Shown one piece after another: positions 33 through 62,035 of a stretch of 64,000 nt of DNA. The notes under the pieces were generated by a model. The model saw only the letters and a program-made list of their open reading frames with translations, was not told the DNA's origin and made no database searches. The position numbers and the translations under genes are program-made. Where the stretch lies: contig NC_068982.1 in the NCBI RefSeq assembly GCF_001194135.2, positions 63,143,798-63,207,797 of the forward strand. The letters run 5' to 3'. Origin of the DNA: Octopus bimaculoides (Eukaryota). The number at the start of each line of letters is the position of its first letter. Position 1 is the first letter of the stretch.

Positions 33-2151
33 TGTTCAAAGACGAAAATAGGTGAAGGAACAACAAGCAGCTGTATTATATTGAAGCTCGGGAAGAATGG
101 AAAAGTCTTTGACGTTTCGAGCATACGCTCTTCCACAGAAAGGAAGTGAGAAAAATACGGAAAGAGAGCGAAAACAAACGAAAACGGAAAGAGAAAAATG
201 TGTAGAGATTAATGGTTCAACATGATGAAATAGCCGGAAGAAAGAAGCTGACATACATAATATAATATAATATAGTATAATGTAATATAATATAGTATAA
301 TGTAATCTAATATAATATAATACATACATATGCAGGTAGTTGCATCGTAGTATTTGCGCATAATATTACAATATATCTATTATTTTATATATTCTTCGAC
401 AGGCCTCTTAGTTACATTATTTTAATGATAAATGAACAATATTAGAAAATAACATAAAAATAAAACACCATAAAAGGAACGTGAAAATAAACGTGAAAAT
501 TAACAACAGCTCGAAATGAATATTAGAAGCATCTCAAGAACATTTATAATCTCTTGATGACATCAGTGGCATTAAAACTTTTATGAATTTTAGTTTACAA
601 TTTTAAAGCTTTCTGTTACATTGGAAAATCCAGGATGTAGTGTCTATAATGAATGTAAGTTATTGTGTTGTAATTTCAATAGACACAGCAACAAGACTGT
701 ATCCTTGATTTTACCACATCTTCGTACGATCAAGTCAGGGATTTCCAGTAGTGGCAGAGTAACATTTCTTCAAGTGCACTGTGTACTCGAATGGTAAAAA
801 CATGATACTAGTTGTGCTGCTACAATGTAAAAAACATTGCGTGCAGGAATAGAATGTATAACAATAGAGAACAAAAACAAATGTATTTGACTGTGTCCAC
901 CTTGCCCATTTCTACGCTTGTAGAAATCACCCTCAATCACCCTCAATCAGAGATACAAACGAACGACAGAGACCTCTACAGAAACTGTCAACCGGTTCGG
1001 AATAATATCCAAATCTTCCTCAAGTGATATCCTTCCCGTTTCTAAAAATAGAAGGTAAACATTAGATAACATAGTCCTCGATACTCCACCTGGAATATGC
1101 TTGACTTAAGCTTAAATAGCAATAAAAGTAGGGGTACAGAAGCACACTCCGTCATAGGTGTATGTCGAATTGCGCAGCATGACGGTGAACTAGATGGTAC
1201 TATAGTATATCTGGAGTAACAGATTCGTGGGTCGAATATGATCTTAGAGCGAAAGATCTGTATAGGTCTAAGTATTCAGAGATGCTCCTATGAGCTTCAA
1301 TAACATGAACAACAATAATCACAATCCCCCCCCCCCATCTCTTTCCTCTCCGTTGAATTGCCGGTATATAATGGACTCCTTCCGCATGGTATCCCGACTA
1401 CTGTTTAATTACCATGGAATTGTTTATAGATAATAGTAGTCTTAGAAATTAATTAGCTTCATGAAAACAATAGTTATATGCTTTTAAACAGTCGGATATT
1501 TGACAGTTTAAGAATAATAGACCTTATTTTCGACCATACACTCACAACAGGGGATATTATATATATATATATATATATATATNNNNNNNNNNNNNNNNNN
1601 NNNNNNNNNNNNNNNNNNNNNNNNNNNNNNNNNNNNNNNNNNNNNNNNNNNNNNNNNNNNNNNNNNNNNNNNNNNNNNNNNNNNNNNNNNNNNNNNNNNN
1701 NNNNNNNNNNNNNNNNNNNNNNNNNNNNNNNNNNNNNNNNNNNNNNNNNNNNNNNNNNNNNNNNNNNNNNNNNNNNNNNNNNNNNNNNNNNNNNNNNNNN
1801 NNNNNNNNNNNNNNNNNNNNNNNNNNNNNNNNNNNNNNNNNNNNNNNNNNNNNNNNNNNNNNNNNNNNNNNNNNNNNNNNNNNNNNNNNNNNNNNNNNNN
1901 NNNNNNNNNNNNNNNNNNNNNNNNNNNNNNNNNNNNNNNNNNNNNNNNNNNNNNNNNNNNNNNNNNNNNNNNNNNNNNNNNNNNNNNNNNNNNNNNNNNN
2001 NNNNNNNNNNNNNNNNNNNNNNNNNNNNNNNNNNNNNNNNNNNNNNNNNNNNNNNNNNNNNNNNNNNNNNNNNNNNNNNNNNNNNNNNNNNNNNNNNNNN
2101 NNNNNNNNNNNNNNNNNNNNNNNNNNNNNNNNNNNNNNNNNNNNNNNNNTA

Positions 2152-2187
<36 letters not shown>

Positions 2188-3187
2188 CGTACGTACGTAC
2201 GCACGTCTGCTTGTGACCATGAATATATAGGTGTGCGTGTGTGTGTAATTTCAGGAATAAATATTTAAATAAATAGATACATTTTTGACAATAAAGATTT
2301 GTATTAATCCATTATGCTTGAATCACTGGCTTCTTTCTTTTAGAAGTAAATGGTACTGCTTCTACCATCTTATCCAAAGTTCATCATCATTATGAATATC
2401 ATCATCACCATCGTCATGCATATCACCACCGCCACCACTACCACCATCATCATCATCACCATCACCATCATCATCATCATCATCATCATTAACAAGCAAC
2501 TGATTTCCTTGTAGCTTATTTCTAATGCCTATTTGCGCTACTTATTCGTCTACTTTGCTTATATGCAATGTGTTATTTTGGTATTGCAGCTTTTTATTGC
2601 AATGTGTCTACTCGTGTTATTTTCTGCATGTTGAACATATTTGTAAATGCTGGCGTTTTGATATTGCATTTGCTTGAAGATTTTATATATTTTCCAAAAC
2701 TTCTATTGACATATTGTTTCTACTTTCAAAATTATTATAATCATTATTAAATCATTATAATAAAAAAGAACAAAAGACATCATCATCACATCATCATCAT
2801 CATCATCATCATCATACGTGTGTGGCAACGACTAACCAAATTGTACTTCACTTATGCTTTGTAAAAACTTTTGGTACATACTTTGTTGCAGAAGTCAATG
2901 CGTAGTGAAAAAGAGAATTGCTCCATTTTTAAAGTCATTTAAAAGCTCATATTCCAATAGAATGATGAAGGCAAAACGTTGTGGAACATTGAAAGTTGGA
3001 AGACTGGACAGGCATTAAAGAACCCGCCAATCACTCATCTACCACAATTACAGCAACAAAACAACATAAACATGAACTAAACTCCAAACCATCAAAAACA
3101 AAAGCAGCAACATAAATATTCAAAAGCTCTAAAAAAGAAGATCGTTGAAGTGATGACGTATGTAGACCAAGATATAAAGATATAGCA

Positions 3188-3570
3188 ATGCAAGACGATG
3201 GTATCGACGAGATTGTCTCAAGAGCAACATTCGCTAAATATTTGAGTAGAACAAAAGCTAGCGGTTTACAAACATTTGCTGAATACGATTACAGGTGTTT
3301 TGAAGGATTTGAAAGTGAAAGTAACTCACAAAATTCTGAAAGGAACCTTTGGAAATCTCCGGAAACCAGATTACCCCATCTATCCCAAATAAAAAGGATA
3401 CTACCTTTACACTTTTTCGTCTAATATGGCTACACTAAAACAAGATTATATAAATTCACGTTAGTGCTAGCTGTGAAGCAGCGTTGCTTGCTTTACGTCC
3501 CCAGGTCACTAGGTAGTTATCTTCAAAAACACTCAAAGTTATGGTGTCCACAAAACGGTTATTGAAAGGT
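3188..3570 (+). pseudogene. Possible very decayed hAT-like transposase C-terminal (dimerisation) remnant
   Basis: LWKSPETRLPHLSQI followed, in another frame, by VSASCE...VTR*LSSKTLKVMV loosely resembles the hAT W...P.L / SASCERxFS...R..L...TL pattern; weak. Confidence 0.25.
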
Positions 3571-4271
3571 CAAAATTTAGGACGTTCTGGCAGATGAACT
3601 TTACGTAAACAAGCCGGACTTGTTTGCTGATATTTTGGCAGCTGAGAGGAAAGCAGTGTTTCGTATTTCTGGTGGAAATGACGAAAGTGGTTTTGTGGTG
3701 AACATAACTAAAAATACTTTCCTTTCCTCTTTGACTAATCCTCTACCAATTTCTTCATGTTTTAATTCAAGAAGAAAGTGATAATAGGGAGTAACGTGCT
3801 GTACTTCCTTTCTAGAATATTTACTGAAAGGTAAAAGGAAGTAGAGGTTATGAACCGTGTGAATAGGCCTACTCTTAGCATTCGTCTGTAAGTTGAAGAA
3901 TAATAGCTGAAAGAAGGCATTTGATTTTGATATTAAGTCTAGTCCTGCACCTGTGGGATTCCCCTGATTCTTCCTACCGACGATTGTTTCTTCATTAGGA
4001 TGTGCTTTACTTTTATTTCTCCTTTTATTGGTGTTTTCTCATACATGGTTCTCTAAAAGACTCTCTCTCACTTAATTTGTCCCTATACTGTTCCTCGATT
4101 CATCGCCCATTTGATAAATAAATAAATGATAATGATAACGACTACTACTACTACTACTTGGGTATATGTACATGGAATGTTGATATATTTATAATATAAT
4201 TCTAACAATAAGAATACTTTTGGAAATAGTGTAGCGTTGATTGCAATAAAATAATATTTCTACAATTCGCA

Positions 4272-4455
4272 CAAAGCCAGGAATTTGGGGTCAGGGTGTT
4301 TAATCTGTTAAATCGACCTCGATATTTGCCTGCTATACTTTATTTTATCGAGTTGAGAGGGATGAAAAGCAAAGTTAACCTCGGCGAGATTTAAACTCAG
4401 AACGTAGAGTTGAGCACTTAAATACCGCAAGGGTCTAACGTGTCTGCCAACCCAC
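4272..4455 (-). mobile_element. SINE family A copy (core GTTCAAAT..CCGAGGTCGACTTTGCCTTTCATCC..GTCGATAAA..AAGTACCAG)
   Basis: Reverse-complement similarity to the well-preserved copy at 46812-47025. Confidence 0.7.
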
Positions 4456-4718
4456 CACACAATAATTACATAAATATATAATAAACAATAACAACAGCGA
4501 CGACGATGACGACGACGACGACGGTGATGATGATGATGTTGTTGATGACGACGACGACGACGATGATGGCGATGGTGGTGGCGATGAGGAGATGACGACG
4601 AGGACGTGGAAGAGGACGACGATGATGATGATAATAAGCTGATAATAATATTAATTAAAAATGCTTGCGAAGACAAACAACTTGTTATAAAATTTCAGTT
4701 GCAGGTTTCTTTTGACAT

Positions 4719-7700
4719 TCATAGTACGTTCATATGAAAAGATTTCAATCTTGGCAAACCATCATTAGTTGTTATTGGTTTTATTGAACATTCTACTGCA
4801 GAGGGACTCGCAGTAATGGCTGCAGTCATTTTTACATCATCGAATTTGACCTTGTTTTCAGAATTGTTGATCAAATTATTGTCATTGTCTGTTTCGAGAA
4901 CATTTTCTTCTCTCAAAGAGAGTGTTTGACATTGTATTATGTCAGTTTTGTCCTCATTATTATTGGACGATGATATGGCTTGGCACTTTGGAGAAACCGA
5001 GTTGTTGAGGCTACTGTCAAAGGAGGTTTTATGTTTTCGTTGTGGAATGTTTGAGTTATCGACATCCGTAAGAGAATGACTCGCGATATGAGTAGAGGGT
5101 AAAGTAGGACTGGAATAATTTTTGTTTAAGCGGAACTGTGACTGAGTGTCTTCAGAATCTAATGTTTGTAGTTTGTTGCTAGCTAATGTATTTTCACTGA
5201 GGTTTAATTGCTCACACGTTGAGCGTAAAACCGAAGTAGTAGAATTGGATGACTGTGGATTTGTGAAAGATTCATATTTTAATATTTGATTTGAGTCGTG
5301 TGTCATTGATGAATCTGGTTCGTGACTTTTTACGCTAATTTCCTCGAGGTTAAACTGATCACTATTCATGTCAGTATCTGAATCAACTACATTGCTATTA
5401 TCGTCGAAAACAAACCTCTGAGCTAATATATCTGAAGTGAGTGAATTATCTGCTGCACTTACCATATCATCTGTATCAATAACAAAAGACTGACTACAAA
5501 GATCGTTCGTCTGAGAATTTGTTGGAGATTCGGAAAAATGCTCGTAGCAAGATTCAAAGTATATATCGGAACCGGAGTCAGATTCTGATTCAGGTTTTGT
5601 GTCCGATTTCTTAGTCATTGATTTATTGTCAATATTTTGGATTGTTTCAGCTTGACTAGATTCAGAGATGATTTCAGATCGCCTGTGTTCATTGACTTTT
5701 TTGTCTAAATCTGCATTTCTGTTTCGTCTTTTATCACCTTCGAAAATATCTTGCTGTATTTGAGATGATATTTGCTTTTGCGACTCAGATTGTGTATGGG
5801 CACCTAGAATCTTTTCAAAATGCCTTTCTGCCCATCTATTGAGGGCTGTATTGCTGAGATGTGGTATCTCATCTACTTCACAAATTTCAGAACAATCACT
5901 ACTTGCGTCTTGTAGTTTCTGTCTTGAACTTTTAGCTTCCATAAAGTCAATTCCTTCCTTCTTGTTATGTACATCTGGATTTAGTTCTGAATCATTTACG
6001 CTTTCCCTTTCTTTGTGGCCACTGTCAATAACATCTGCTTGTTTATCCTCTATAATTAATTCGTTTTTATCGGTTTCATCGATTACGTCTTTGAATTTAA
6101 TATCAACTTTATCCATGACTTTTTTATCAGTTGTTTTTGAAGAATTACTTTCACTATCTTCAGTCTCTTCCGGAAGGTCACCAATACTATGAGTATCTAT
6201 TTGGTTTTCTTCACATTTTTGCAATTCAAGTTTATCTTCCTTAGACTCATCCCCTTGATGATTTGGTGAGTGTGCATCATTGGGTGAGCTAATTTGCAAA
6301 TTCATGTTTAATATTCTAGTGTCAGCAAACGGAGTTTGCGTATCTGATGCTAGCGACCCATTTTTGTGTTCTAGCTTCGGATGGTCTTCACTGACTTTTG
6401 AAGAATTAAATGTATTTTCACCTGACAAACTATCCCTCTGGACAGAATTACGTCTTGATCCAGAGTTCAAATTGGAATTCATTTCAGAAATAATATTCAC
6501 ATGTTTTTCAGCCCAATTTTTGATACCATTATGACTTTCTGCAATTTTTACAGTTGAAGTAGGTTTACATTTTTTCTTTGTTTCATCATTATTTTGAGGG
6601 GAATCAAGTGTAGGATTAGTTGTCACATTAGAAGTCATGCTGGAAATTTTTCGTGCATGTCTCTCTGCCCATTCACTCACACTAAGTTTATTTTGTATAC
6701 ATTGCTGTTCTTGTTTTCTTTTTTCTATTCTCGTTCGTTCGACATCGAGTTCAGAAGCAACTGGCGAATTAGAAGCCATACTGGAAACTCTTCGAGCATG
6801 TCTCTCTGCCCACTCACTTACATTTAATGTTTTATTTGCATCATTTTCAAATTGAACATTGTTAACATTATCTAAAGTGTCAACAGGGATATTTCTAGAA
6901 GAACTAATATCAGACTTTCCTTCTGAGATCAATTTTACATGTTTTTCTGCCCATTGACTTAATGGAAGTCTATTTTCAATTTTCTCACTGTCGTTATCAT
7001 CATTAGAGCTTTCACTGTTTTTGCGAGAATTAGTTTTCACTGGAGTAACTGGCGGAGTTATGAATTCCGAAATCAATTTCAAATGCTTTTCTGCCCAACC
7101 TTTCAGACTCACTTGTTTTTCAGTTTTACTTTCTTTATCGCTTGTTAGGGAAGACGCTTTAGGGCTGATTTGTGGACTGCCTTCTGTGGAATTCATGCCA
7201 CCTGGTAAAACAATTTCTGATATTGTCTGCAAATGACGTTCTGCCCATTCATTTAGACTAAGACTTGTTTTGGACGGACTATTGGGTGTGTCTGTATTGG
7301 TGTTTTCTTGCTTAGGTTGAATTTTATTTGGTGATAATCTTATGTCTTTTGATTCCTTTCTCGAATTAATTGTCGGAGGTATGTTGCTGCCGGAGCTAGT
7401 TCGTGAGTTTTTGGACTCAGATAAAGGAGTTGATGAAAACTGCGGATTTCTTAATCCAATTTTACTGAAATGTTCATTAATAGCTTTCTTTGATTGTAGG
7501 AAAGACGGACTGCTTGTGACAATGCTTGTCTCAGCACAGCATAAAGAGGAATTTCTACGATTATTGTCTCTTGAATCTTTAGTATATTCTGGGCTAGTTG
7601 ATTTAGTATTTTCGTGTCTCCCTGGGGAGATTTGAGATGATTTGTAAGGGTAGATTGGGGCTCCAGGAAGTGGTATAATTGGACGAGCACCCATACTCAT

Positions 7701-9200
7701 TCTGAATGCTGATTTTGAGAAATGTTCTTCCATTAGCTTTCTAGACTCCAAAAAAGAGGCACTACGATTTACAACTGACTCTTCATTAGAGTCCATTCTG
7801 TGTGGTTTTTTAATTCCAACGCTTGGTTCCCGATCATCTTTTCTTTCCTGTGGATTTAATTTTTTGTTGAGTTTTTGAACTAATTCTGAATGTAATGCCT
7901 GAACATTAACAGGCAAATTACTATGTTCGTTTGACTTCGAATTATTTAGTGAACTGTAGTCAGATCTTTTATTTAGAATCGAATTTTGCGAAACATTCTT
8001 CATTGACGCTGTGTCATGGGAAGAATCTTTCAAAAACATACAATTCTTTTCTTTCTCCTTAACCGAGGTGATAATAATTAATTCTTCTTCACCAAGATAG
8101 TCAAGTGAGTCACTCCGTTGACGTCCCAAGGCTAACGTGACAGATGGTTTGGTGTTTGCTGGACGGTTACCATGACTGTGTTTACTGTTAATGTCTACTT
8201 CTTGTCTATTCACGCCGTTTTTACATTTCCGATCAAAAGAAGACAAACTCTTTGGATACAGAGTATGTGTCTCCTCCCGTCTATTGTCTGAAGACTTCAA
8301 TGTATTTTGCGAGAGTTTGTGCGGTAAGATATTGATATCATTGGTTTTGTTTTTACATGTGCCACTTGTCTCTTGGTTGTTCAGTTGTGATTCTTTAACA
8401 TAAGATTCTTTACAATTTTCAAAGATATTAATATCCTCAAATGACGGTATATTCATGTTCTTTACCTCAATATTGTTTACGCTCCTTGTTTCGCTTGAAC
8501 TATTTACCTGCTTGTTAGATTTATCAAACAGTTCGTGGAACTCTTCTGCACTCACATAATGATTCTGACCATATTGGTCTTTATAAATATAATAACCTCC
8601 TTCCGATTCTTCATATTCATAACTAGCATTGTCGTAACCAGTGACAACGCCTTTCTTTAACCTGCATCTATATCTCGCAGCGTTTCCTTCCCTTTGACTG
8701 GGACTTGTTTTAGATGGAATCGTGATAATTACTTCATCTTCATTGTCTTCTCCTTCTTCTTCTTCTTCTTCTTCTTCTTCTTCTTCTTCTTCTTCTTCGT
8801 CTTCTTCTTCTTCTCCTTCTTCTTCTTCTTCTTCTTCTTCTTCTTCTTCTTCTTCTTCTGCTTCTGCTTCTTCGTCCTCATGTTTCCTTCCTTCCTCCTG
8901 TTCTTCTTCCGCACACCTCGGTGTGGCTTCTGTATGTACCGAGGCCCATTTGTGCGTGTAAGCCTCAGGAGATGGTGTTTGTTCCTCACCTTCCGGTGAA
9001 GGCTCGAACTGCTTCTCGTTCACCGCTGATCTTTGTGGTGTTTCTATTCCTTCTTCAGCCAATTCTTTTACATCTGGCAGTTTATGTGATCCACGCGAGC
9101 AAATAAATTCCAAAATAAGTTTATTCACTTTGTCCGGTGCTTCCAACATAACCATATGGCTAGCCTCATCTACTATTTCCAGCTTCGATCCGTGGATAGT
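4719..9200 (-). CDS. ABHD8: ABHD8 terminal coding exon: end of the hydrolase domain (SHMVMLE, catalytic His) plus a ~1,460-aa low-complexity C-terminal extension
   Basis: Acceptor actattttag|ACT at 9200, phase 0. TIHGSKLEIVDEASHMVMLEAPDKVNKLILEFI continues without a stop for 1,493 codons to the stop at 4721-4719. An ORF this long in AT-rich DNA is not expected by chance. Confidence 0.9.
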   Translation of the reverse strand, partial: TIHGSKLEIVDEASHMVMLEAPDKVNKLILEFICSRGSHKLPDVKELAEEGIETPQRSAVNEKQFEPSPEGEEQTPSPEAYTHKWASVHTEATPRCAEEEQEEGRKHEDEEAEAEEEEEEEEEEEEEEGEEEEDEEEEEEEEEEEEEEEGEDNEDEVIITIPSKTSPSQREGNAARYRCRLKKGVVTGYDNASYEYEESEGGYYIYKDQYGQNHYVSAEEFHELFDKSNKQVNSSSETRSVNNIEVKNMNIPSFEDINIFENCKESYVKESQLNNQETSGTCKNKTNDINILPHKLSQNTLKSSDNRREETHTLYPKSLSSFDRKCKNGVNRQEVDINSKHSHGNRPANTKPSVTLALGRQRSDSLDYLGEEELIIITSVKEKEKNCMFLKDSSHDTASMKNVSQNSILNKRSDYSSLNNSKSNEHSNLPVNVQALHSELVQKLNKKLNPQERKDDREPSVGIKKPHRMDSNEESVVNRSASFLESRKLMEEHFSKSAFRMSMGARPIIPLPGAPIYPYKSSQISPGRHENTKSTSPEYTKDSRDNNRRNSSLCCAETSIVTSSPSFLQSKKAINEHFSKIGLRNPQFSSTPLSESKNSRTSSGSNIPPTINSRKESKDIRLSPNKIQPKQENTNTDTPNSPSKTSLSLNEWAERHLQTISEIVLPGGMNSTEGSPQISPKASSLTSDKESKTEKQVSLKGWAEKHLKLISEFITPPVTPVKTNSRKNSESSNDDNDSEKIENRLPLSQWAEKHVKLISEGKSDISSSRNIPVDTLDNVNNVQFENDANKTLNVSEWAERHARRVSSMASNSPVASELDVERTRIEKRKQEQQCIQNKLSVSEWAERHARKISSMTSNVTTNPTLDSPQNNDETKKKCKPTSTVKIAESHNGIKNWAEKHVNIISEMNSNLNSGSRRNSVQRDSLSGENTFNSSKVSEDHPKLEHKNGSLASDTQTPFADTRILNMNLQISSPNDAHSPNHQGDESKEDKLELQKCEENQIDTHSIGDLPEETEDSESNSSKTTDKKVMDKVDIKFKDVIDETDKNELIIEDKQADVIDSGHKERESVNDSELNPDVHNKKEGIDFMEAKSSRQKLQDASSDCSEICEVDEIPHLSNTALNRWAERHFEKILGAHTQSESQKQISSQIQQDIFEGDKRRNRNADLDKKVNEHRRSEIISESSQAETIQNIDNKSMTKKSDTKPESESDSGSDIYFESCYEHFSESPTNSQTNDLCSQSFVIDTDDMVSAADNSLTSDILAQRFVFDDNSNVVDSDTDMNSDQFNLEEISVKSHEPDSSMTHDSNQILKYESFTNPQSSNSTTSVLRSTCEQLNLSENTLASNKLQTLDSEDTQSQFRLNKNYSSPTLPSTHIASHSLTDVDNSNIPQRKHKTSFDSSLNNSVSPKCQAISSSNNNEDKTDIIQCQTLSLREENVLETDNDNNLINNSENKVKFDDVKMTAAITASPSAVECSIKPITTNDGLPRLKSFHMNVL

Positions 9201-9863: not shown

Positions 9864-10071
9864 CGCTTTCATTAGCTTAGCATCCTCTAATGTGGCAAAA
9901 GTATCATCTCGACCGTTTATAAGTAGTGTGGGGACGCTAATCCAACTGTGATAGACTTCATCGCCTTCGGGCCAGTCTTGACCATTGATGACATAATGTA
10001 GAACAAAAGACGGTATGTTAAAGGAAGCCCTCTTCAACATCTCGTTTTTTTGTTTGGTCTTGAAAGCTGAC
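9864..10071 (-). CDS. ABHD8: ABHD8 coding exon 4 (SAFKTKQKNEMLKRASFNIPSFVL...WPEGDEVYH...INGRDDTF...MKA)
   Basis: Acceptor cttttgtag|G at 10071, donor GCG|GTAGGT at 9864. 208 nt, phase 2/0. WPEGDEVYH is characteristic of ABHD8; candidate catalytic Asp in GRDD. Confidence 0.93.
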
Positions 10072-11713: not shown

Positions 11714-12334
11714 NNNNNNNNNNNNNNNNNNNNNNNNNNNNNNNNNNNNNNNNNNNNNNNNNNNNNNNNNNNNNNNNNNNNNNNNNNNNNNNNNNNNNNN
11801 NNNNNNNNNNNNNNNNNNNNNNNNNNNNNNNNNNNNNNNNNNNNNNNNNNNNNNNNNNNNNNNNNNNNNNNNNNNNNNNNNNNNNNNNNNNNNNNNNNNN
11901 NNNNNNNNNNNNNNNNNNNNNNNNNNNNNNNNNNNNNNNNNNNNNNNNNNNNNNNNNNNNNNNNNNNNNNNNNNNNNNNNNNNNNNNNNNNNNNNNNNNN
12001 NNNNNNNNNNNNNNNNNNNNNNNNNNNNNNNNNNNNNNNNNNNNNNNNNNNNNNNNNNNNNNNNNNNNNNNNNNNNNNNNNNNNNNNNNNNNNNNNNNNN
12101 NNNNNNNNNNNNNNNNNNNNNNNNNNNNNNNNNNNNNNNNNNNNNNNNNNNNNNNNNNNNNNNNNNNNNNNNNNNNNNNNNNNNNNNNNNNNNNNNNNNN
12201 NNNNNNNNNNNNNNNNNNNNNNNNNNNNNNNNNNNNNNNNNNNNNNNNNNNNNNNNNNNNNNNNNNNNNNNNNNNNNNNNNNNNNNNNNNNNNNNNNNNN
12301 NNNNNNNNNCAAACTTCTTACAGAGAATCGAACC

Positions 12335-13595: not shown

Positions 13596-15380
13596 GGCCA
13601 TGGGAACGAAAATGTGCCCCAACTATGCGAACCTGTTCGTTGGCTACGTTGAGGCCCAAATATTCTCAAGTTTCACTGGTCCCACTCCCGAACTATACGG
13701 CCGTTATTTTGACGACTGTATCGGTGCGACCTCACTCTCCCGCGAACATCTAGACTCCTTCCTCTCTTTTGTCAAACCTTTCCATCTGCCCTTCACTTCT
13801 CCTGCAATATCTCTGACACTTCTGTCTCCTGTCTTGACATTTCGGTCAGCATTCATCACTCCACTCTTACCACCTCCATACACTACAAACACAGAGACTC
13901 ACACTCATACCTCAGCTTCTCCTCCTCCCACCCTAAAAACACCAAGCCTTCCATCCCCTATTCCTAATTCCTCCGTCTACGCAGGCTCTTCAGTGACGAC
14001 CATGACTTTGAGACTAGTCTCAACTCATGGCTCGCCACTTCATCCTACGTGGTTATCTCCTCACCACTATCCACACCGCCCTTGCCAGAGCACACTCTGT
14101 GGACTGTGTACCTGCTCTCTCTCCTCGCAGCCGCCCCGTCGTCTCCCGTTTCCCCTCACCTACCACCCCACCACCCTACCTCTTCAACGCACCATTCTCC
14201 GAGCCTTCCGGCGACTCCAGTCTGACCCCTCCACTTCGCACACCTTCCTTAACAGACCCCTCCCCTCCTTCAAACGAGTCCACAATCTACGAGACNNNNN
14301 NNNNNNNNNNNNNNNNNNNNNNNNNNNNNNNNNNNNNNNNNNNNNNNNNNNNNNNNNNNNNNNNNNNNNNNNNNNNNNNNNNNNNNNNNNNNNNNNNNNN
14401 NNNNNNNNNNNNNNNNNNNNNNNNNNNNNNNNNNNNNNNNNNNNNNNNNNNNNNNNNNNNNNNNNNNNNNNNNNNNNNNNNNNNNNNNNNNNNNNNNNNN
14501 NNNNNNNNNNNNNNNNNNNNNNNNNNNNNNNNNNNNNNNNNNNNNNNNNNNNNNNNNNNNNNNNNNNNNNNNNNNNNNNNNNNNNNNNNNNNNNNNNNNN
14601 NNNNNNNNNNNNNNNNNNNNNNNNNNNNNNNNNNNNNNNNNNNNNNNNNNNNNNNNNNNNNNNNNNNNNNNNNNNNNNNNNNNNNNNNNNNNNNNNNNNN
14701 NNNNNNNNNNNNNNNNNNNNNNNNNNNNNNNNNNNNNNNNNNNNNNNNNNNNNNNNNNNNNNNNNNNNNNNNNNNNNNNNNNNNNNNNNNNNNNNNNNNN
14801 NNNNNNNNNNNNNNNNNNNNNNNNNNNNNNNNNNNNNNNNNNNNNNNNNNNNNNNNNNNNNNNNNNNNNNNNNNNNNNNNNNNNNNNNNNNNNNNNNNNN
14901 NNNNNNNNNNNNNNNNNNNNNNNNNNNNNNNNNNNNNNNNNNNNNNNNNNNGCCGAACACACACACCACCCTTCCTTTCCCCACTCTCACCTCCTCCACA
15001 TCCCAACACCACCACACCATACCACACATCACCACATCATACACCACCATACCACACAGCACTACATCACATCACACCACCACGCACACACTAGCACTGA
15101 CCACTTCCCAGCCCCACACCATCATCCACACACATACACATACACGCACACATCAAGGTCACCAGCCCTCTTCCTCACGCACATACATGCTCTCTTATAC
15201 CAACGCACACTCACCTTCGTTTTGGGATCACCACTATATAAGTATCTCCCCTTCTTCCTAGCTGTCCTGTGTGATCCCTCTGTCCGGCATTCGCCATGAT
15301 AGCTCGCTGGCCACCACTACACATGCCTTATTTTCTCTACTTGTCTCTTTCTTTTCACTTCCCGAATGTTAAACTAATAC
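13596..15380 (+). mobile_element. Penelope-like element remnant (RT fragment plus terminal repeat region), interrupted by gaps
   Basis: AMGTKMCPNYANLFVGYVE...YGRYFDDCIG is Penelope-type RT; frameshifted downstream. 15120-15310 is homologous to 25040-25240 (shared CACCTTCGTTTTGG(G/A)ATCACCA). Confidence 0.85.
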
Positions 15381-17239
15381 NNNNNNNNNNNNNNNNNNNN
15401 NNNNNNNNNNNNNNNNNNNNNNNNNNNNNNNNNNNNNNNNNNNNNNNNNNNNNNNNNNNNNNNNNNNNNNNNNNNNNNNNNNNNNNNNNNNNNNNNNNNN
15501 NNNNNNNNNNNNNNNNNNNNNNNNNNNNNNNNNNNNNNNNNNNNNNNNNNNNNNNNNNNNNNNNNNNNNNNNNNNNNNNNNNNNNNNNNNNNNNNNNNNN
15601 NNNNNNNNNNNNNNNNNNNNNNNNNNNNNNNNNNNNNNNNNNNNNNNNNNNNNNNNNNNNNNNNNNNNNNNNNNNNNNNNNNNNNNNNNNNNNNNNNNNN
15701 NNNNNNNNNNNNNNNNNNNNNNNNNNNNNNNNNNNNNNNNNNNTATATATATAATGGGACAAGAACGCAAAACATCCGGACAGTTAGGTGATACAAAAAT
15801 GGGACAACAAAACATCCAGATAGACGCTACAAAGAAAATAAGGACGGGTCATTCAAAGTTTTCTTTCCTCAGTCGAGTACCAGATTATTTTCGCAATTTC
15901 GGCTGATTATACTCGAGATTGCTCCAATCTGGCCAGCCCCAAGGAAAAACTAAGCTAAGAGCATTAGATTCCTTGGAAGACAGCAGCAAATGTATACAAA
16001 AACAAGGACGAAAAAAACAGACAATGTCACACAAACACAATAAAAATAATCACAGGAGTTAACAACAGGTGTCTTTCGACTAAGGACGAATTAAATTAAG
16101 CTGGCGCGTGTGGTAATAAAGCCTTAGGGCAGGGATACAAGGTTTCACAAGCACAGGGAGGAATATCGTCTGAATAATTGTTAAAAACGTGTGAAATAAG
16201 TCAATGCAAACCCTTTATTTTTCTCTGTTCCAAAAAAAAAAGCAAGACTTAAAACGTACCCGTTATAAACTGCAATCCATCTTTTCTAATAGTTATCTTA
16301 GGTTCTTATACACAATGTTTATGCATGAAAATATCTAATCACACTGCCGAATTATATACAACATGAAAATTAGTCCAGTTATTTCTGGCACTAGACTGTA
16401 ATTGCTTTATATACCAGTTGATAGACAAAAGGGTGGAAAGTATTTAAGTTTTAAGAAAGGCCACGAACAATAATATATGTTAAAGTGATCACCACTGTTT
16501 TCTTTGGGCTAAAAGATGCGCAAGAAATATTAGCGTTTTGCTTCTCACAGTGCAGTGCTACCAATGGTACTAAAGTAATCTTCGTTCCCTTTTCCTTCAA
16601 ACTAGACACGATTATTTCACAAATGAGATAGTAAATCTGCTTATATTTATAGCCGCCTCTACTTCGAAATATAGTGTGAAATTACTTATATATTTATTGA
16701 TGATGTAAAGACATACAGATATATGGCAGAATGCGCCAGAATAATTAATTTATCAAAACGCTGCATAGTGAAAATGCCCTTTCTTTTTTTAGCTTAGTTG
16801 CTAGTTTGCAGCATTTGCCACAACTATTAAATAAATATATATCTTCTCAGTTAAATGCAATGCAGAATCATGGCGACTGGCACTTTGTACAGAAATCTAT
16901 TTCAACTGACCAGCAATAGCAAGATGGCATCTATTGCATTTTTGGCAAAGACGTGTAGTTTTAGTTGGTGAAGACTTATATGCTTGTTTTGATTTATGTA
17001 CATACAATAGTTAAGAAGATTTAAGTTAGAAACCCAAACTCGATTAGAAGCTGAACATATTAATATATTCCATGCGTCTTGTTTTGATTTTATATAATTA
17101 CTGCGATTCTCTTTAAAATATATATTACCTTCGTGTTTGTCTATCTTTTCTTTTTAGATCCGATTTGAGGCAGTAGTTGGATATCTAGTTCAGTGTATAA
17201 TGGGATATTACTATATACTTGTATCAGTATCTCCATAAA

Positions 17240-22249: not shown

Positions 22250-23480
22250 GGCAATAAAAGAAAACAGCGATAAAATACTTAAGAAAGCAATAGGACCGGC
22301 ACAATGCAAGATAGCACCACCGAAAACCAAAGCTGGGGAGACCATCACAGACCAGCTGAAGCAAATGGAGAAATGGGTGGAGCATTAATCCGAGTTATAC
22401 TCCCAAGATAGCTCCATTTCGAAAACATCACTGAACAGCTTGGAAAGTTTGCTGGTCATGGACGAACTGGACATACCCCCAACCGTAGAGGAATTAGAAA
22501 AAGCACACGACTCATTATCAACTGGAAAAGCACCAGGACTAGATGGGATACCAGCTGAAGTTATCTAGTGTTCGAAAGAAGACATCCTGTATCAACTCCA
22601 CCATATCCTGCCATTGCTGGGAGGAAGGGGAGATACGTAGTGATTTGAAAGACAGTAAAATTGTCACGTTGAATAAAAACAAAGGAAGCAGGAGTCACTG
22701 TGACAGCTGTAGAAGTATATCGCTGTTCAGTGTCGTCGGGAAGGCATTTGCTCGCGTGACTCTCGACCAAGTTCGGAAACTTGCTGAAAGGATCTACCCA
22801 GTTTCTCAAAGTGGCTTCAGATCGGAACGATCTACGATGGATATGATTTTCTCTCTTATGCAGTTACAAGAGAAGTGCAGGGAACAGAACTAACTGCTCT
22901 ACATTGCATTCGTTGACTTGACGAAGGCGTTCGACATGGTGAGTAGGAATGGGTTATTCCTAGTTCTTGAGAAGATTGGGAGTCCTCCTCGACTGCTCCG
23001 CATCCTTCAGTCTTTCCATTTGTACATGAAGGCCACAGTACAATTCAACGGAAACACCTCAGAATCCTTTGATGTTCGACGTGCGGTAAAACAGGGATGC
23101 GTGTTTGCTCCTACCCTGTTCAACATCTACTTCGCTATCATGCTGAAGTATGCATTTGGTACGCAAAACGACGGCGTTTGCCTCCACACAAGGTCGGACG
23201 GTAAACTATTCAATCTGTCAAGGCTCAATGCGAAGATCAAAAACTGCAGGGTTTACGTCCGGGAGATGCTGTTTGCCGACGATGCAGCTCTAGTAGCTCA
23301 TTCAGAACTGCAACTGCAAACAATGATGGACAATCTCAACCGGGCGTGCAGTGACTTCAGCTTAACAATCAGCCAACAGAAGACCAAGGTAATGAGCCAA
23401 GGCATCTCGGATCCCCTCATCATTACAATCGATAACCACTCACTCGATGTGGTCCGTGAGTTTACGTACCTTGGCTCAAC
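22250..23480 (+). mobile_element. RTE-clade (BovB/RTE-1-like) LINE reverse transcriptase fragment, pseudogenised
   Basis: KAPGLDGI, FVDLTKAFDMVSR, VKQGCVFAPTLFNIYF, SDGKLFNLSRL, LFADDAAL, FTYLGST; stops and frameshifts; truncated by a SINE at 23491. Confidence 0.9.
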
Positions 23481-23490
23481 ATATATATAT

Positions 23491-23820
23491 GGTGAAGGCT
23501 CAGTGATTAGATCGTCGAGCTTACGATCGTGAGATTGTGAGTTCGAATCCCGGACCGGGCTGCGTGTTGTGTTCTTGAGCAAGACACTTTATTTCACGTT
23601 GCTCCAGTTCACTCAGCTGTAGAAATAAGTTGCGATGTCACAAGTGCCAAGCTGTATCGGCCTTTACCTTTCCCTTGGATAACACTTGTGGCGTGGAGAG
23701 GGGAGGCTGGTATGCATGGGCGACTGCTGGTCTTCCATAAACAACCTTGCCCGGACTTGTGCCTGGGAGGGTAAATTTCTAGGTGCAATCCCATGGTCAG
23801 TCATGACCGAAAGAGGTCTC
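23491..23820 (+). mobile_element. tRNA-derived SINE family C with a CORE-like central block
   Basis: B box GAGTTCGAATCCC, then CTTGAGCAAGACACTTTATTTCACGTTGCTCCAGTTCACTCAGCTG. The same block is at 32470-32510 (-) and 11300-11335 (-). Confidence 0.8.
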
Positions 23821-30008: not shown

Positions 30009-31870
30009 TGACATTTGGTAGTTTGCTCAGGTGCTCTCTTTGTTGGTGTTGGGAAAGTATAGACATTTCCCATTAGTGTTTGCCTTGTATGTTGTGTGCG
30101 TAATGCGATTTATGTTTTTCTGCTGGTTGTCCTACCTGTAGAGTACATGTATTTTTTTTAGATATTTACTGTATAGAGTGTACCTTGTGCTTGTGGATTA
30201 TTTTATTCGGTTTGTGCTATTGAAGGGATGGTAAACTCGGCATTCTGAGCAACTTGTGGTGGCTTGTGTTCCCAGCAAGTCTTTTTGTGAGGGAGGCTGT
30301 ATATGCAGCAATTTATGTACTGAGCTGCCCTGTCCTCTGCCATACTTTTACAAGTATTCTGTTGGTGCTAGTCTGCTGCATCAAGACATTATGTGATCGA
30401 TTGTCTCTGGGAGCTCTCCGCATAAGCGGCATGATGAGTCATTTTCATATTTCAGGACATTACTCTGGTAATCCTTGTTGGAAAGGACTGATCCTAAGCA
30501 TCAATGATATACCCTTCAGTTTCCGGTTTCAGACCGGAGGAGCATGAGAACCACTGATGTGTAAGGGCTTAATGAACATCATGGTCCCTGATTCAAGTCG
30601 GGTATTTACCATGTAGCGACCATTGTTCCAATTTCTTCTTAATATCTTGGAGGTTGGATTGTTTGGCTACGGTTTTCATTTGTTGTGCCTTGTCTGTTGG
30701 GGATATATTTACTTATGGTAGTGGCGCGTCTAGTTGTATTTCTAGGAGGTATATTTTCGAGTTTTTAGTCACTGAGTGCAACTTCTAGGTATCTTCATGT
30801 TTCAGAGTCAGTTTTAATATCCAGTGGTTTGTTTGTTGCAAGTAGGTAGAAAGGCCCATGGTTGTAATTTTCAATGAAAGTTAGGACTGTATCAACCTCT
30901 GACCGCCTTCTTTTCCCGGAAAGTATGTTTTGTTTGTGTGATGTATATGGTGCATTGTCATCAGCTTTCGTATTCTGACATCAACTTTGTTGATTTCAGA
31001 GAGAAACTAGTTTATAATCTTGAAGCTATATATGATTAAAGGCATGAATACTATTTATGACCCCAATTTTGTTTTTGGCGTTCAACTCGGTTTTCAGAAT
31101 GGCACTCACTCCTTAACTTTTCTTTGGTTAGTGAGCGTTTAATCCTATTTCCTTCACATACATTTAGATACTTGTAATTACCCTGAGGTTCTAATTCTTC
31201 TATCTCGGTGTGTACCAAAGGTGATGTTACATGTGTTTGATTGTTTTCCCTTAGTAAATGTTGCCTTGGCGCATTTGTCAAGCCCAAATTTCATCTTGAT
31301 GCTATCACTTAATTGCTTGACTGTGTATTGGAATGCCTGCAGTTATTGGTCATTTTTTTGTGAACAAGTCATCCATGTAGAGATGACAAACTGTTTTTCC
31401 ATAGGCACTGTATCCATAATTTGTTTCATTCAAGAGTTTACTAAGAGGAAACCGTGCAAAACAGAGTAACAAAGGAGATAATGAGTATCCTCGAGAGATT
31501 CCACAATCAATATTGAGTTGTCCGGTGTTTATAGTTGTCGTGTCAATGTTGAAAATTAATGTAGTTTTTCAGAGCTTCGTGATGCGAGATACACACTTTC
31601 TCATTACTGGCGAGAGTTTAAACATCTCCAAGCATTCATTTATCCAACTGTGAGGAAGACTATCAAAGTCCCTTTTGTAGTCTATCTAGGCCACTAAAAG
31701 ATGCTTTTTCCTGCTGTGAGAGTTTTCTGAATTCATTCTTTTACTGAACAGTTAATATCTGCATTAACCCCCACCTTTACATATTTTTTGTTCATCAGAG
31801 ATGATGTTGCTGATGAGAAAAGCACATGTACATTCCATTAGGAGATATGTAAGGGTATTGTACATTGTTG
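29335..31870 (-). mobile_element. R4/Dong-like LINE remnant (RT plus REL endonuclease), interrupted by a SINE and microsatellites
   Basis: IDYK..FDSLPHSW, HLYMDDL, MKFGLDKCAKATF, LIDISIPTDDNVSLKETEK..KYKDL.IE, LGTAHIL; multiple stops and frameshifts. Confidence 0.8.
29772..29950 (+). mobile_element. SINE family A copy nested in the R4/Dong remnant
   Basis: CAACTTTGCCTTTCACCCTTTCGGATCGATAAATTAAGTACCAG...ATAATCGACTAG. Confidence 0.75.
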
Positions 31871-34101: not shown

Positions 34102-34119
34102 NNNNNNNNNNNNNNNNNN

Positions 34120-40110: not shown

Positions 40111-40278
40111 TTTTCAAAGACCTGGTCCAAGCATGGTCGGATACAGGAAACAATCCATAAAGGCAGAGCAAAAATCCCAATTTCTGGTGCTAGAGGAATC
40201 GGTCCACCACCACTTATCATGATAAGCCTCCAGACACGCCTGGCTCGTTCACGAGCCAGTACCGTGGTGAAAGCACAT
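40111..40278 (-). CDS. ABHD8: ABHD8 coding exon 3 (CAFTTVLARE...IMISGGGPIPLAP...VFEK)
   Basis: Acceptor tatctcttttag|A at 40278 completes the Gly codon of GHSYG. Donor AA|GTGAGT at 40111. 168 nt, phase 2/2. IMISGGGP matches ABHD8 IMINGGGP. Confidence 0.92.
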
Positions 40279-43200: not shown

Positions 43201-43813
43201 TTAATGTATGCTGTAACCTTTTAATCAAAACATGACACCGTGGGTAGAGGCTGATATCTTACCATTTCTGATGGTCATAATTATTAAAAAAATTATTAAA
43301 GATTTATATAGAACTACATTCAGAATATGTCTATAAGCTATTGTGTTTAGACCTGGTTTAGACCTCTAAATGTTCCGTTTTGTAGATGCAATTTTTTCTT
43401 TCTTAATAAAGCACTCCGAAATTAGAAAAATAAAAAATCTGCAACAATNNNNNNNNNNNNNNNNNNNNNNNNNNNNNNNNNNNNNNNNNNNNNNNNNNNN
43501 NNNNNNNNNNNNNNNNNNNNNNNNNNNNNNNNNNNNNNNNNNNNNNNNNNNNNNNNNNNNNNNNNNNNNNNNNNNNNNNNNNNNNNNNNNNNNNNNNNNN
43601 NNNNNNNNNNNNNNNNNNNNNNNNNNNNNNNNNNNNNNNNNNNNNNNNNNNNNNNNNNNNNNNNNNNNNNNNNNNNNNNNNNNNNNNNNNNNNNNNNNNN
43701 NNNNNNNNNNNNNNNNNNNNNNNNNNNNNNNNNNNNNNNNNNNNNNNNNNNNNNNNNNNNNNNNNNNNNNNNNNNNNNNNNNNNNNNNNNNNNNNNNNNN
43801 NNNNNNNNNNNNN

Positions 43814-46147: not shown

Positions 46148-46481
46148 CCATATGAATGTCCGATGATTAAATTTTTCTTTTTGCAATATCTGTCAAAAAT
46201 TGCAAGGACATCGGCCAAAATCTCTCGGAAATGGTAAGCTCTCTTTTTTAATGGAATTTCACTCATACCATGACCGATTAGATCAGGAGCCACAATTTCG
46301 AAACCGAGGCTGGAGAAATAACTGATTTGTGTCTGCCAAATATCGGAACTTCCACCGACGCCATGAAAAAAGAACAGAACGATATTCTTCAAGGCCGAGG
46401 CTGAACGTATACCCATTTTGAAAAGCATTCTCTTTTGGTCTTTGGATAATCCAGAGAAAAGTACATTCGACCTCGCCTTGC
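46148..46481 (-). CDS. ABHD8: ABHD8 coding exon 2: HGVGGS oxyanion region, APDLIGHG, nucleophile elbow GHSYG
   Basis: Acceptor ttctttaag|G at 46481, donor GG|GTAAGT at 46148. Its 334 nt fit phase 1 in and phase 2 out. Translation IVLFFFHGVGGSSDIWQTQISYFSSLGFEIVAPDLIGHG...IIGHSYG is typical ABHD8; catalytic Ser codon at 46155-46153. Confidence 0.93.
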
Positions 46482-48595: not shown

Positions 48596-48938
48596 CATCA
48601 TATGGGATATGTCTTTTGTGTTGAGCCCCTGGAGCATTTGAGGAAGCAGACATCTTGCTGAATCCATTCCGAACGTTGTTTTGGTTTGCATTAGGATCGG
48701 CAACGATACATTTGTTGCCGTAGAAATTGACACGTGGCACACGAAGTTCTACAGGCGGAAGTGACGAATTCTTGATCTGTTTTGCTTGCGGAAGTTGTTT
48801 ATTGCGCATACGTGGATTGATATGTTGTATTCGCAAAACCCGACCTTTGCGAACTTCCACCAAATCTACATCGAGATTGGCGTTCGGTGCGGGGAAGACC
48901 TTGGAAGACCGACGAGGTTTTAAACAGGGAAAAGGCAT
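48596..48938 (-). CDS. ABHD8: ABHD8 coding exon 1 (MPFPCL...VEVRKGRVLRIQH...PYD|G); the exon extends as 5' UTR to an acceptor at 49042
   Basis: VEVRKGRVLRIQH resembles the N-terminal VEVKPGRVLRVKH block of vertebrate ABHD8 (recalled). ATG at 48938 is the first in-frame ATG after an in-frame TGA. Donor G|GTATG at 48596/48595 (phase 1). Upstream acceptor tttctttatctttccag| at 49043/49042. Confidence 0.8.
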
Positions 48939-54456: not shown

Positions 54457-55019
54457 NNNNNNNNNNNNNNNNNNNNNNNNNNNNNNNNNNNNNNNNNNNN
54501 NNNNNNNNNNNNNNNNNNNNNNNNNNNNNNNNNNNNNNNNNNNNNNNNNNNNNNNNNNNNNNNNNNNNNNNNNNNNNNNNNNNNNNNNNNNNNNNNNNNN
54601 NNNNNNNNNNNNNNNNNNNNNNNNNNNNNNNNNNNNNNNNNNNNNNNNNNNNNNNNNNNNNNNNNNNNNNNNNNNNNNNNNNNNNNNNNNNNNNNNNNNN
54701 NNNNNNNNNNNNNNNNNNNNNNNNNNNNNNNNNNNNNNNNNNNNNNNNNNNNNNNNNNNNNNNNNNNNNNNNNNNNNNNNNNNNNNNNNNNNNNNNNNNN
54801 NNNNNNNNNNNNNNNNNNNNNNNNNNNNNNNNNNNNNNNNNNNNNNNNNNNNNNNNNNNNNNNNNNNNNNNNNNNNNNNNNNNNNNNNNNNNNNNNNNNN
54901 NNNNNNNNNNNNNNNNNNNNNNNNNNNNNNNNNNNNNNNNNNNNNNNNNNNNNNNNNNNNNNNNNNNNNNNNNNNNNNNNNNNNNNNNNNNNNNNNNNNN
55001 NNNNNNNNNNNNNNNNNNN

Positions 55020-57082: not shown

Positions 57083-57598
57083 NNNNNNNNNNNNNNNNNN
57101 NNNNNNNNNNNNNNNNNNNNNNNNNNNNNNNNNNNNNNNNNNNNNNNNNNNNNNNNNNNNNNNNNNNNNNNNNNNNNNNNNNNNNNNNNNNNNNNNNNNN
57201 NNNNNNNNNNNNNNNNNNNNNNNNNNNNNNNNNNNNNNNNNNNNNNNNNNNNNNNNNNNNNNNNNNNNNNNNNNNNNNNNNNNNNNNNNNNNNNNNNNNN
57301 NNNNNNNNNNNNNNNNNNNNNNNNNNNNNNNNNNNNNNNNNNNNNNNNNNNNNNNNNNNNNNNNNNNNNNNNNNNNNNNNATATATATATATATATAATA
57401 GATCTCTGAGCGAGGCATAAACAGTAGCTGCACGACATCGTGAAGTGTATTTGCCACCTAAATGTAGCTAACAATTAAAGGTTGATGCTACTGTAGATTG
57501 TAGCCTTAGGAAGACATCTCCAGCTGACTATTGACTCACTATCTGTACCCTATCAGTATTTGCAAAGGGTAGTCATCGTTCTCATCTCCACCATGATA

Positions 57599-58106: not shown

Positions 58107-58366
58107 NNNNNNNNNNNNNNNNNNNNNNNNNNNNNNNNNNNNNNNNNNNNNNNNNNNNNNNNNNNNNNNNNNNNNNNNNNNNNNNNNNNNNNNNNNNNNN
58201 NNNNNNNNNNNNNNNNNNNNNNNNNNNNNNNNNNNNNNNNNNNNNNNNNNNNNNNNNNNNNNNNNNNNNNNNNNNNNNNNNNNNNNNNNNNNNNNNNNNN
58301 NNNNNNNNNNNNNNNNNNNNNNNNNNNNNNNNNNNNNNNNNNNNNNNNNNNNNNNNNNNNTATTTT

Positions 58367-61159: not shown

Positions 61160-62035
61160 TGGAGACGCAATGGCCCAGTGGTTAGGGCAGTGGACTTGCG
61201 GTCATAGGATCGCGGTTTCGATTCCCAGACCGGGCGTTGTGAGTGTTTATTGAGCGAAAACGCCTAAAGCTCCACGAGGATCCGGCAGGGGATGGTGGCG
61301 AACTCTGCTGTACTCTTCCACCACAACTTTCTCTCACTCTTACTTCCTGAATCTGTTGTGCCTGTAGTTCAAAGGGTCAGCCTTGTCACACTGTGTCACG
61401 CCGAATATTCCCAAGAACTATGTTAAGGGTACACGTGTCTGTGGAGTGTTCAGCCACTTGCACGTTAATTTCACGAGCAGGCTGTTCCGTTGATCGGATC
61501 AACTGGAACCCTCGGTTCTTTTTTAAAATGGGGGTCACATTTTTCATTAACGAAACACTTTGAAACTTGGAACACTGGTAGAATGTGTCATATAAAACAT
61601 CTTTTTCTCTTAGTCTTCTTTTAAAAAAAAGAAATCCATAAATTATTCCATGTTAAAGTTGTCGTATTTCTGTAATTTCAATCAATCACTGACGTCCATT
61701 CAACCGATATNNNNNNNNNNGTTAGGGTTAAAGCAAATTTAAAATGAAAAAAGCAAATAAAACGAAGAATCGTTTGTTTATGTAGTCGGCACTTAATGTA
61801 TATCGGCTGAATGAACGTCAGTGATTGGTTGAAATTATCGAAATAAGACAATTTTTTACATGAAATAAATTCGAATACAAAAATATTTTTCTGTTCTATA
61901 ACACAAAATAGATAAGTATACGGAGTTTGAAAGTCTTTCGGTACCAAAAACACTACGTAAAACATTAATGAAAAATGTGGCCCCCGTTTTAAAAAAGATC
62001 CGAACCCTCGACGTCGTAAGCGACGGAGTGCCATC
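61160..62035 (+). mobile_element. tRNA-derived SINE split by a MITE (SINE at 61160-61513, resuming at 62002-62035)
   Basis: A box TGGCCCAGTGG, B box GGTTTCGATTCCC; 3' tail shared with 32290-32450; the tail resumes after the MITE with a duplicated GAACCCTC. Confidence 0.8.
61514..62001. mobile_element. Non-autonomous DNA transposon (MITE) with TIRs and an 8-bp TSD
   Basis: Left end GGTTCTTTTTTAAAATGGGGGTCACATTTTTCATTAA vs reverse complement of the right end GGATCTTTTTTAAAACGGGGGCCACATTTTTCATTAA. Inner inverted repeat ~61674-61710 vs ~61800-61838. TSD GAACCCTC at 61506-61513 and 62002-62009. Confidence 0.85.

Follow-up and report, generated by a model that had tools for sequence, protein, structure and literature searches.

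Short motifs in the disordered chain of AKAP79/AKAP5 dock PKA and calcineurin. To our knowledge, ABHD8 is among the least understood of the metabolic serine hydrolases, and an adaptor role is the sole mechanism reported for it in mammals. Mammalian ABHD8 was described as an adaptor that recruits zDHHC12 to NLRP3 (PMC13625376). The present analysis deals with the ABHD8 gene of Octopus bimaculoides, which lies on the minus strand of a stretch of 64,000 nucleotides (nt) of contig NC_068982.1 (positions 63,143,798 to 63,207,797). This whole stretch is referred to as the window, and coordinates without prefix are counted from its first letter. The reading proposed here is that octopod ABHD8 consists of a normal hydrolase head and a selected tail of about 1,455 residues, obtained as the last exon grew to 1,493 codons from an Aplysia-like size of about 100, and that this tail would act in multivalent docking. 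A probability of roughly 0.78 was assigned to it.

Gene structure and identity of octopus ABHD8

The last coding exon of the gene was read as an uninterrupted minus-strand frame of 1,493 sense codons closed by TAA. Its acceptor is formed by a polypyrimidine tract and ttttag, followed by ACTATCCACGG as the first exon bases (junction at 9201/9200). The preceding exon 4 ends in ...LMKA, with AAAGCG followed by the donor gtaggt at 9864/9863. The giant exon begins with the residues TIHGSKLEIVDEASHMVMLE, which represent the last strand and the catalytic His of the alpha/beta-hydrolase. Its first 36 residues or so complete the hydrolase fold, and the remainder forms the tail. At a GC content of about 36%, one stop is expected in roughly 14 codons by estimate, so that chance cannot account for a frame of this length. 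Elsewhere in the window, no open reading frame (ORF) of more than 300 amino acids (aa) was found except across N gaps. Four further cephalopod sequences also keep this giant-exon frame open. The four upstream exons were located by tblastn using the Sepia transcript product P0002 (see below), and their boundaries were then read directly. All junctions of the five joined exons are of the GT-AG type with compatible phases, giving a coding sequence of 5,535 nt and a protein of 1,844 aa, for which a mass of about 200 kDa was estimated. An earlier note, made from the letters of the window alone, had claimed a 4,482-nt exon that carries the end of the hydrolase and stays stop-free for 1,493 codons within an 1,844-aa protein. 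The rebuilt gene model agrees exactly with it.

Residues 149-378 of the spliced product matched the Pfam families PF00561 (Abhydrolase_1, 1.4e-23) and PF12697 (Abhydrolase_6, 1.4e-17), and esterases and hydrolases of the PDB matched the head with a best value of 3.7e-15. A search with the hydrolase domain gave 152 matches at E<=1e-20, the top ones being named ABHD8 or ABHD8-like, from molluscs through vertebrates. The N-terminal motif VEVRKGRVLRIQH, of the form [VI]E[VI]R.GR.LR[IV].H, is common to octopus and other ABHD8 proteins. In an alignment of nine sequences (molluscs, an annelid and a sea urchin), the Ser of GHSYG, the Asp of GRDD and the His of SHMVM all fall in invariant columns, as expected from the intact triad that had been noticed at the outset. 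Judged from these alignments, the gene of the window is the octopod orthologue of ABHD8 with an intact predicted Ser-Asp-His triad, and its predicted product agrees with the family in each feature tested except size. At the N-terminus, coleoid ABHD8 displays a single Cys (MPFPCLKPRR). Several other lophotrochozoan ABHD8 proteins (P0003, P0007, P0008 and P0017) begin with a cluster of Cys (CC, CCC or CCCSC) which resembles a palmitoylation site.

The joining of head and tail in one messenger was clearly observed in cuttlefish. Two proteins, P0001 and P0002, were returned by a search with the last exon. P0002 (1,647 aa) is encoded by the 5,459-nt contig L001 (ORF 371-5314) from RNA sequencing (RNA-seq) run SRR20545812, which is a larval RNA-seq data set of the golden cuttlefish Sepia esculenta (PMC10466719). 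The N-terminus and the whole hydrolase, with all four exon junctions joined, are encoded in this one ORF, which then continues for 1,277 residues after the catalytic His. Seven more products of 1,647 aa, from other Logan assemblies, share the 90% cluster of P0002; these are known from cluster membership, while the one Sepia contig was examined directly. The S. esculenta mRNA is colinear with the genome of Sepia pharaonis over the whole giant exon, the uninterrupted alignment starting at the homologous acceptor and reaching past the stop. P0001 (1,459 aa) lies on the genomic contig L002 (SRR11869394) of another octopod, and displays the same intron and the same acceptor. Transcripts that end or splice out soon after the hydrolase domain, which the earlier note had named as the finding to be set against its claim, are contradicted for cuttlefish by the full-ORF contig; for octopus, no transcript was retrieved.

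Parts of the gene are already present in the databases. The entry CAE1309496.1 of Sepia (Acanthosepion) pharaonis, named 'ABHD8' (1,346 aa), is the same gene with the giant exon but without the first exons. The tail half of the same gene is found in Octopus sinensis as XP_036356245.1 (842 aa, 'signal transducer and activator of transcription B-like'). Over the giant exon, amino-acid identity is about 92% between S. pharaonis and S. esculenta, and 90% between O. sinensis and the window. A signal transducer and activator of transcription (STAT) identity of this half was rejected, as neither STAT nor any other Pfam family matched the whole last exon or its blocks, and low-complexity similarity seems to have produced the name as an artefact. 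The literature searched contained no paper linking ABHD8 with cephalopods, and the letters of the tail motif retrieved nothing there but unrelated words. As far as searched, the tail is undescribed in print, and its parts stand in databases as unremarked or misnamed models.

Origin of the tail and selection

The length of the region following the catalytic His was compared with that of about 115 non-cephalopod ABHD8 proteins, which were taken from the hydrolase search and cover bivalves, gastropods, annelids, echinoderms, a hemichordate and vertebrates. It amounts to 1,478 residues in octopus and 1,277 in S. esculenta, versus 19-139 in the comparison set, where the lone exception is a chimeric rodent model fused to a zinc-finger domain. 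Complete ABHD8 proteins measure about 380-490 aa in vertebrates, 366-586 aa in bivalves and gastropods, and 669 aa in the annelid Owenia. The proteins of bivalves, gastropods and annelids exceed the vertebrate length through their N-terminal region and not through the C-terminus: in nearly all full-length models of other lophotrochozoans, 181-395 aa precede HGVGG, versus 153 in coleoids. Several of the bivalve, gastropod and annelid proteins end in a short S.KS.KS.P..L peptide.

The introns of Aplysia ABHD8 occupy the same three positions as in octopus, namely after GHSYG, after ..FYK and before TI... The last exon of Aplysia starts with the same TI.. codon and contains just 100 codons, while the homologous exon is uninterrupted over 1,493 codons in octopus and about 1,290 codons in S. 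pharaonis. The shared introns and the short last exon of Aplysia indicate that the coleoid state is an enlarged ancestral last exon. Both parts of the original proposal, an extension of the last exon and its restriction to a lineage, are borne out by these comparisons, and the lengths in the groups compared indicate that long tails are not general in invertebrates. The cephalopods compared were octopods and cuttlefish; on this sampling, the alignments support coleoids, and not octopus alone, as the lineage carrying the long tail. The hydrolase-domain search relied on a word index and did not list the cephalopod proteins P0002 and P0124 despite about 88% identity to the query, so that absence from its results is not proof of absence from the database.

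A faint likeness was seen between the octopod C-terminus LPRLKSFHMNVL (4722-4760) and C-terminal peptides of gastropods and bivalves (SLPHNLLSKSF.., SMPHGLL.. and SIPNLNL). If real, it would mean that the tail was inserted ahead of the old C-terminus, and did not arise by read-through past the old stop. The C-terminus of Sepia differs (..EIAYTTI).

Selection was addressed by comparing the window with L002 across the exon. The rates of synonymous (dS) and nonsynonymous (dN) substitution were 0.22 and 0.096, giving a dN/dS of 0.45, and this ratio was 0.19 in the islands which are also conserved in Sepia. The differences were distributed over the three codon positions as 135/138/210, and all six indels were whole codons. 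When 483 substitutions were placed randomly, a mean of 21.8 stops was obtained (minimum 9 in 2,000 runs), while none was observed. Gap openings numbered 7 in an alignment of 4,262 nt made up almost wholly of exon, versus 14 in 1,816 nt consisting mostly of intron 4. Between S. esculenta and S. pharaonis, the tail displayed a dN/dS of 0.28. Taken together, dN/dS, codon positions, indels and the stop simulation indicate translation of the tail, and constraint on it, in each of the two main coleoid branches. By sequence comparison, it was shown that the tail was present before the divergence of octopods and cuttlefish and that it is under purifying selection.

Conserved islands, repeats and predicted structure of the tail

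The tail is rich in S, N, E and K, and contains several conserved islands and repeated motifs (Table 1). The island VTLALGRQRSDSLDYLGEEELIIIT carries a site resembling those of basophilic kinases and 14-3-3 together with a LIIIT core. The corresponding block, VTLALGRQRSDSLDYLG.E.LIIIT, is nearly identical in octopus and Sepia and fits the patterns RxRxxS and RSxSx. Successive starts in the tandem array lie 141-150 nt apart for copies one to five, and the sixth follows after 156 nt. AlphaFold2 placed a helix at the core present in every unit, L-S-[LV]-x-E-W-A-E-[RK]-H-x-x-x-[IV]-S. From five sequences, 28 copies of this WAE[KR]H core were collected, giving L-S-[LV]-x-E-W-A-E-[RK]-H-hydrophobic-x-x-[IV]-S-E, in which W and H never vary and A and E seldom do. 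Four copies are present in Sepia, seven in the window and eight in the O. sinensis assembly. The extra O. sinensis unit is 141 nt long (L003:10271-10693 against 6603-6976 of the window) and 89% identical to its neighbour; it represents either a change of copy number between close species or a collapse or expansion in assembly. A hidden Markov model built from the WAE[KR]H repeats did not recover the FLxSKK..EHFSK motifs, which were therefore treated as a separate motif. The predicted motif helices are amphipathic, with hydrophobic moments of 0.34-0.55 versus a tail mean of 0.19.

Table 1. Coordinates of the ABHD8 exons and of tail features in the window.
Feature	Position	Strand	Description
Exon 1	48596..48938	-	ATG start MPFPCLKPRR..., N-terminal family motif VEVRKGRVLRIQH, donor G followed by gtatgt; found by tblastn with Sepia P0002
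Exon 2	46148..46481	-	HGVGG oxyanion region to nucleophile elbow GHSYG; Aplysia intron also directly after GHSYG
Exon 3	40111..40278	-	CAFTTVLARE...DQVFEK; intron of about 30 kb downstream
Exon 4	9864..10071	-	208 nt, catalytic Asp (GRDD); same size in S. pharaonis
Giant last exon	4719..9200	-	1,493 codons (9200..4722) and TAA (4721-4719); frame kept open in L002, L003 (two pieces) and L004
Catalytic His codon (SHMVM)	9156-9158	-	aligned with 8 other ABHD8 proteins
Island YDNASYE..YYIYKDQYG..HYVSAEEFHELF	8517..8636	-	exon residues 189-228; conserved between octopus and Sepia; predicted beta-hairpin and helix
Island VTLALGRQRSDSLDYLGEEELIIIT	8067..8141	-	exon residues 354-378; octopus and Sepia identical except at two positions
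First FLxSKK..EHFSK helix motif FLESRKLMEEHFSK	7713..7763	-	exon residues 480-496; AlphaFold2 helix 481-495
Second FLxSKK..EHFSK copy FLQSKKAINEHFSK	7461..7511	-	exon residues 564-580; AlphaFold2 helix 565-580
Tandem array, six units of 141-156 nt	6477..7271	-	exon residues 644-908; protein motifs, DNA repeat families D2-D5
Seventh, isolated WAERH motif	5796..5855	-	exon residues 1116-1135; AlphaFold2 helix 1117-1133
FDDNSNVV, last block common with Sepia	5385..5408	-	about 220 residues beyond it in octopods only

The earlier note had also proposed that no known domain was added to the enzyme, and this was upheld in all collections searched. No Pfam family matched the whole last exon at E<=1, and nothing meaningful was found for five separate blocks. 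A phmmer search of the tail against the PDB sequences gave no match. A profile of the tail recovered octopod sequences only among 1.84 billion representatives, and P0001 and P0002 only in a collection of 5.8 billion clusters. The profile and sequence searches of these large protein collections thus showed no detectable relative of the tail beyond the cephalopods. A GYF or GYF_2 domain was considered for the YYIYKDQYG..HYVSAEEF block and rejected, since no Pfam GYF match was obtained even at E<=10 and the profile of the block gave chance-level matches in the PDB (best E 0.11, a complementarity-determining region of an antibody). A weak match resembling a hemopexin blade (E 0.43) was judged to be due to chance.

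AlphaFold2 was run on residues 1-1200 of the exon. The predicted local distance difference test (pLDDT) score was below 50 for 1,059 residues (88%). A hairpin with strands 203-207 and 213-217 and a helix at 218-228 were predicted at YYIYKDQYG..HYVSAEEFHELF with a pLDDT of 64-69. Helices were also predicted at both FLxSKK..EHFSK motifs and at all seven WAE[KR]H motifs. Outside the islands, long helices were placed at 818-836 and 1139-1181, together with a few shorter ones. At the level of prediction, the tail would be mostly disordered and structured chiefly at the conserved islands.

Linear motifs were scanned by regular expressions for B56 LxxIxE, PP1 RVxF, LC8 TQT, EB1 SxIP, the clathrin box, LIR, FFAT, NPF, DPW and CtBP. 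Matches conserved in all three sequences (window, P0001 and P0002) were RQRSDS, RSDSLD, RSASFL, LIIIT and two LxxIxE patterns, namely VNIISE, located within one repeat, and LPDVKE, located where the tail begins. Conservation in the same three sequences also holds for the [EQ]LIIIT block, in which the Pro of the calcineurin-docking PxIxIT is replaced. Such pattern matches may be used as leads, not as evidence. The consensus of the RII-binding helix of A-kinase anchoring proteins (AKAP), [AVLISE]xx[AVLIF][AVLI]xx[AVLI][AVLIF]xx[AVLISE], matched neither the tail encoded in the window nor that of Sepia; a single unconserved match was present in P0001, outside the motifs.

Further features were recorded in the gene and its surroundings. 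A (GAA)n microsatellite in the coding exon (8746..8873, minus strand; TCT x 42.7 on the plus strand) encodes poly-Glu; it has 28 codons fewer in the second octopod and is missing from Sepia. A (CGATGA)n / 39-nt repeat at 4498-4632, just 3' of the stop, is probably low-complexity sequence of the 3' untranslated region, and a spurious ORF of 122 aa rich in Ser, His and Arg (4308-4676, minus strand) arises from it. Intron 3 (about 30 kb) contains RVT_1 fragments at 22918-23532 (plus strand, E 1.8e-15) and 31353-31568 (minus strand, E 2.7e-3), and these reverse-transcriptase fragments look like decayed retroelements. The region at 22-24 kb is the GC-richest of the window (43%). Ten N runs represent assembly gaps (1583-2149, 11714-12309, 14296-14951, 15381-15743, 34102-34119, 43449-43813, 54457-55019, 57083-57380, 58107-58360 and 61711-61720). 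None of the ten touches an ABHD8 exon, and 'ORFs' that consist of X and exceed 200 aa arise from the first three.

Competing explanations and possible function of the tail

The O. sinensis annotation is what could suggest one gene for the hydrolase and another for the tail, with the whole tail or just its distal half made separately from its own start: RefSeq holds two adjacent models (895 aa, and XP_036356245.1 with 842 aa), and the second begins at an internal Met within the repeat array. However, the split comes down to a single missing A, the O. sinensis assembly reading ATATACT-AAGATTC where the window and L002 both read ATATACTAAAGATTC. This 1-nt deletion in an AAA run (L003:9480-9680, CM016860.1 at about 158,105,570) leads to the two RefSeq models. 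The frames on either side, of 544 and 1,012 codons, overlap and both stay open, and a break of this kind would be expected from an indel in the assembly or from a change of very recent date; from the sequence around it, an assembly indel is the likely origin of the split. Moreover, the frame is continuous in the window, in L002 and in both Sepia species, the Sepia mRNA joins head and tail, and the STAT domains are among the Pfam families that the tail does not match. Two separate genes are thus considered highly improbable. A different reading accepts the long form and regards it as a minor isoform, most octopus mRNAs giving a conventional ABHD8 of about 400 aa. The Sepia contig with the full ORF and the seven further 1,647-aa products argue against it, and selection on the tail implies that the tail is regularly translated. 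A short isoform would in any case coexist with the long one and not replace the finding. A predominance of the short form was therefore judged unlikely.

The tail might also be a neutral read-through product: the ORF would have run by accident into AT-rich sequence, which is translated and has no function of its own. Several of its properties would fit: it lacks any homologue or domain, its composition is rich in S, N, E and K at the GC content of about 36% also seen in the surroundings, a microsatellite and changes of length are present within the exon, and dN/dS rises to 0.53 outside the islands. Lack of function is nevertheless difficult to reconcile with a frame that two octopods and, likewise, two cuttlefish keep open, and O. 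sinensis too apart from the one 1-nt indel, or with the absence of all of the roughly 22 stops expected between the two octopods. Islands of 25-45 residues are nearly identical in octopus and Sepia at a dN/dS of 0.19, and the W and H of the WAE[KR]H core do not vary over the 28 copies, its A and E hardly so. Neutral read-through was consequently regarded as very unlikely.

Some observations also weigh against the preferred reading of a selected docking tail. For octopus, neither transcript nor protein evidence was found, exact look-ups of the contiguous ORF forms of the window gave no match, and the frame is broken in the O. sinensis assembly. The value of 0.53 between window and L002 means that much of the tail outside the islands is weakly constrained. 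The AlphaFold2 model was derived from just four sequences with a mean pLDDT of 34.6, and the disorder is a prediction only. Finally, the WAE[KR]H helices match no known docking-motif consensus among those tried.

For the preferred reading, the following course of events is suggested. The tail would have arisen within the last exon from sequence without detectable homologue, and would then have lengthened by tandem duplication of the 141-150-nt unit (47-50 residues). One possibility is that the repeated WAE[KR]H helices bind a single kind of partner in several copies, or else an oligomer or a surface; the block resembling phosphorylation sites may provide regulated docking. Through such a tail, the hydrolase could be tethered or concentrated, or further proteins could be brought to the enzyme. 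The proposal fits the adaptor role of mammalian ABHD8 (PMC13625376). Of the 'enzyme-scaffold fusion' advanced in the earlier note, the fusion is present as one spliced ORF in cuttlefish, and the scaffold or multivalent docking function is what we infer.

A more specific picture is possible, though doubtful. WAE[KR]H would be a new docking-helix repeat born in coleoids which, with the phospho-site/LIIIT block, might have turned a small, possibly membrane-associated ABHD8 into a large AKAP-like signalling scaffold, possibly in the nervous system, while octopus, squid and cuttlefish evolved, with a tail derived from sequence without detectable homologue. The tail resembles AKAP79/AKAP5 in its long disordered chain with short conserved helices and linear motifs, and LIIIT contains the IIIT core of the AKAP79 calcineurin anchor PIAIIIT. 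This is a functional analogy only. Unlike AKAP79, with which there is no sequence homology, the tail has no RII consensus in its motif helices, E/Q-L replaces P-x in front of the core, and the presumed scaffold is continuous with an enzyme.

Disordered extensions confined to a single lineage are common. What sets the ABHD8 tail apart is its size, its age, the lack of any homologue that could be detected, a repeat motif that is new and well defined, and the fact that it is attached to an enzyme. It appears to be a clear instance of a large homologue-less coding region growing in one exon, partly by tandem duplication of 47-50 codons, and bears on how lineage-specific proteins of cephalopods arise. 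The finding also corrects the public annotation, namely the split gene and the false STAT name in O. sinensis. Defined peptides are now available for the search of partners: the WAE[KR]H helix, FLxSKK..EHFSK and RQRSDSLDYLG..LIIIT (RQRSDSLDYLGEEELIIIT). Coleoids thereby offer a natural experiment, in which an ABHD8 head is welded to a tail of more than 1,300 residues that has been selected since before octopods and cuttlefish diverged.

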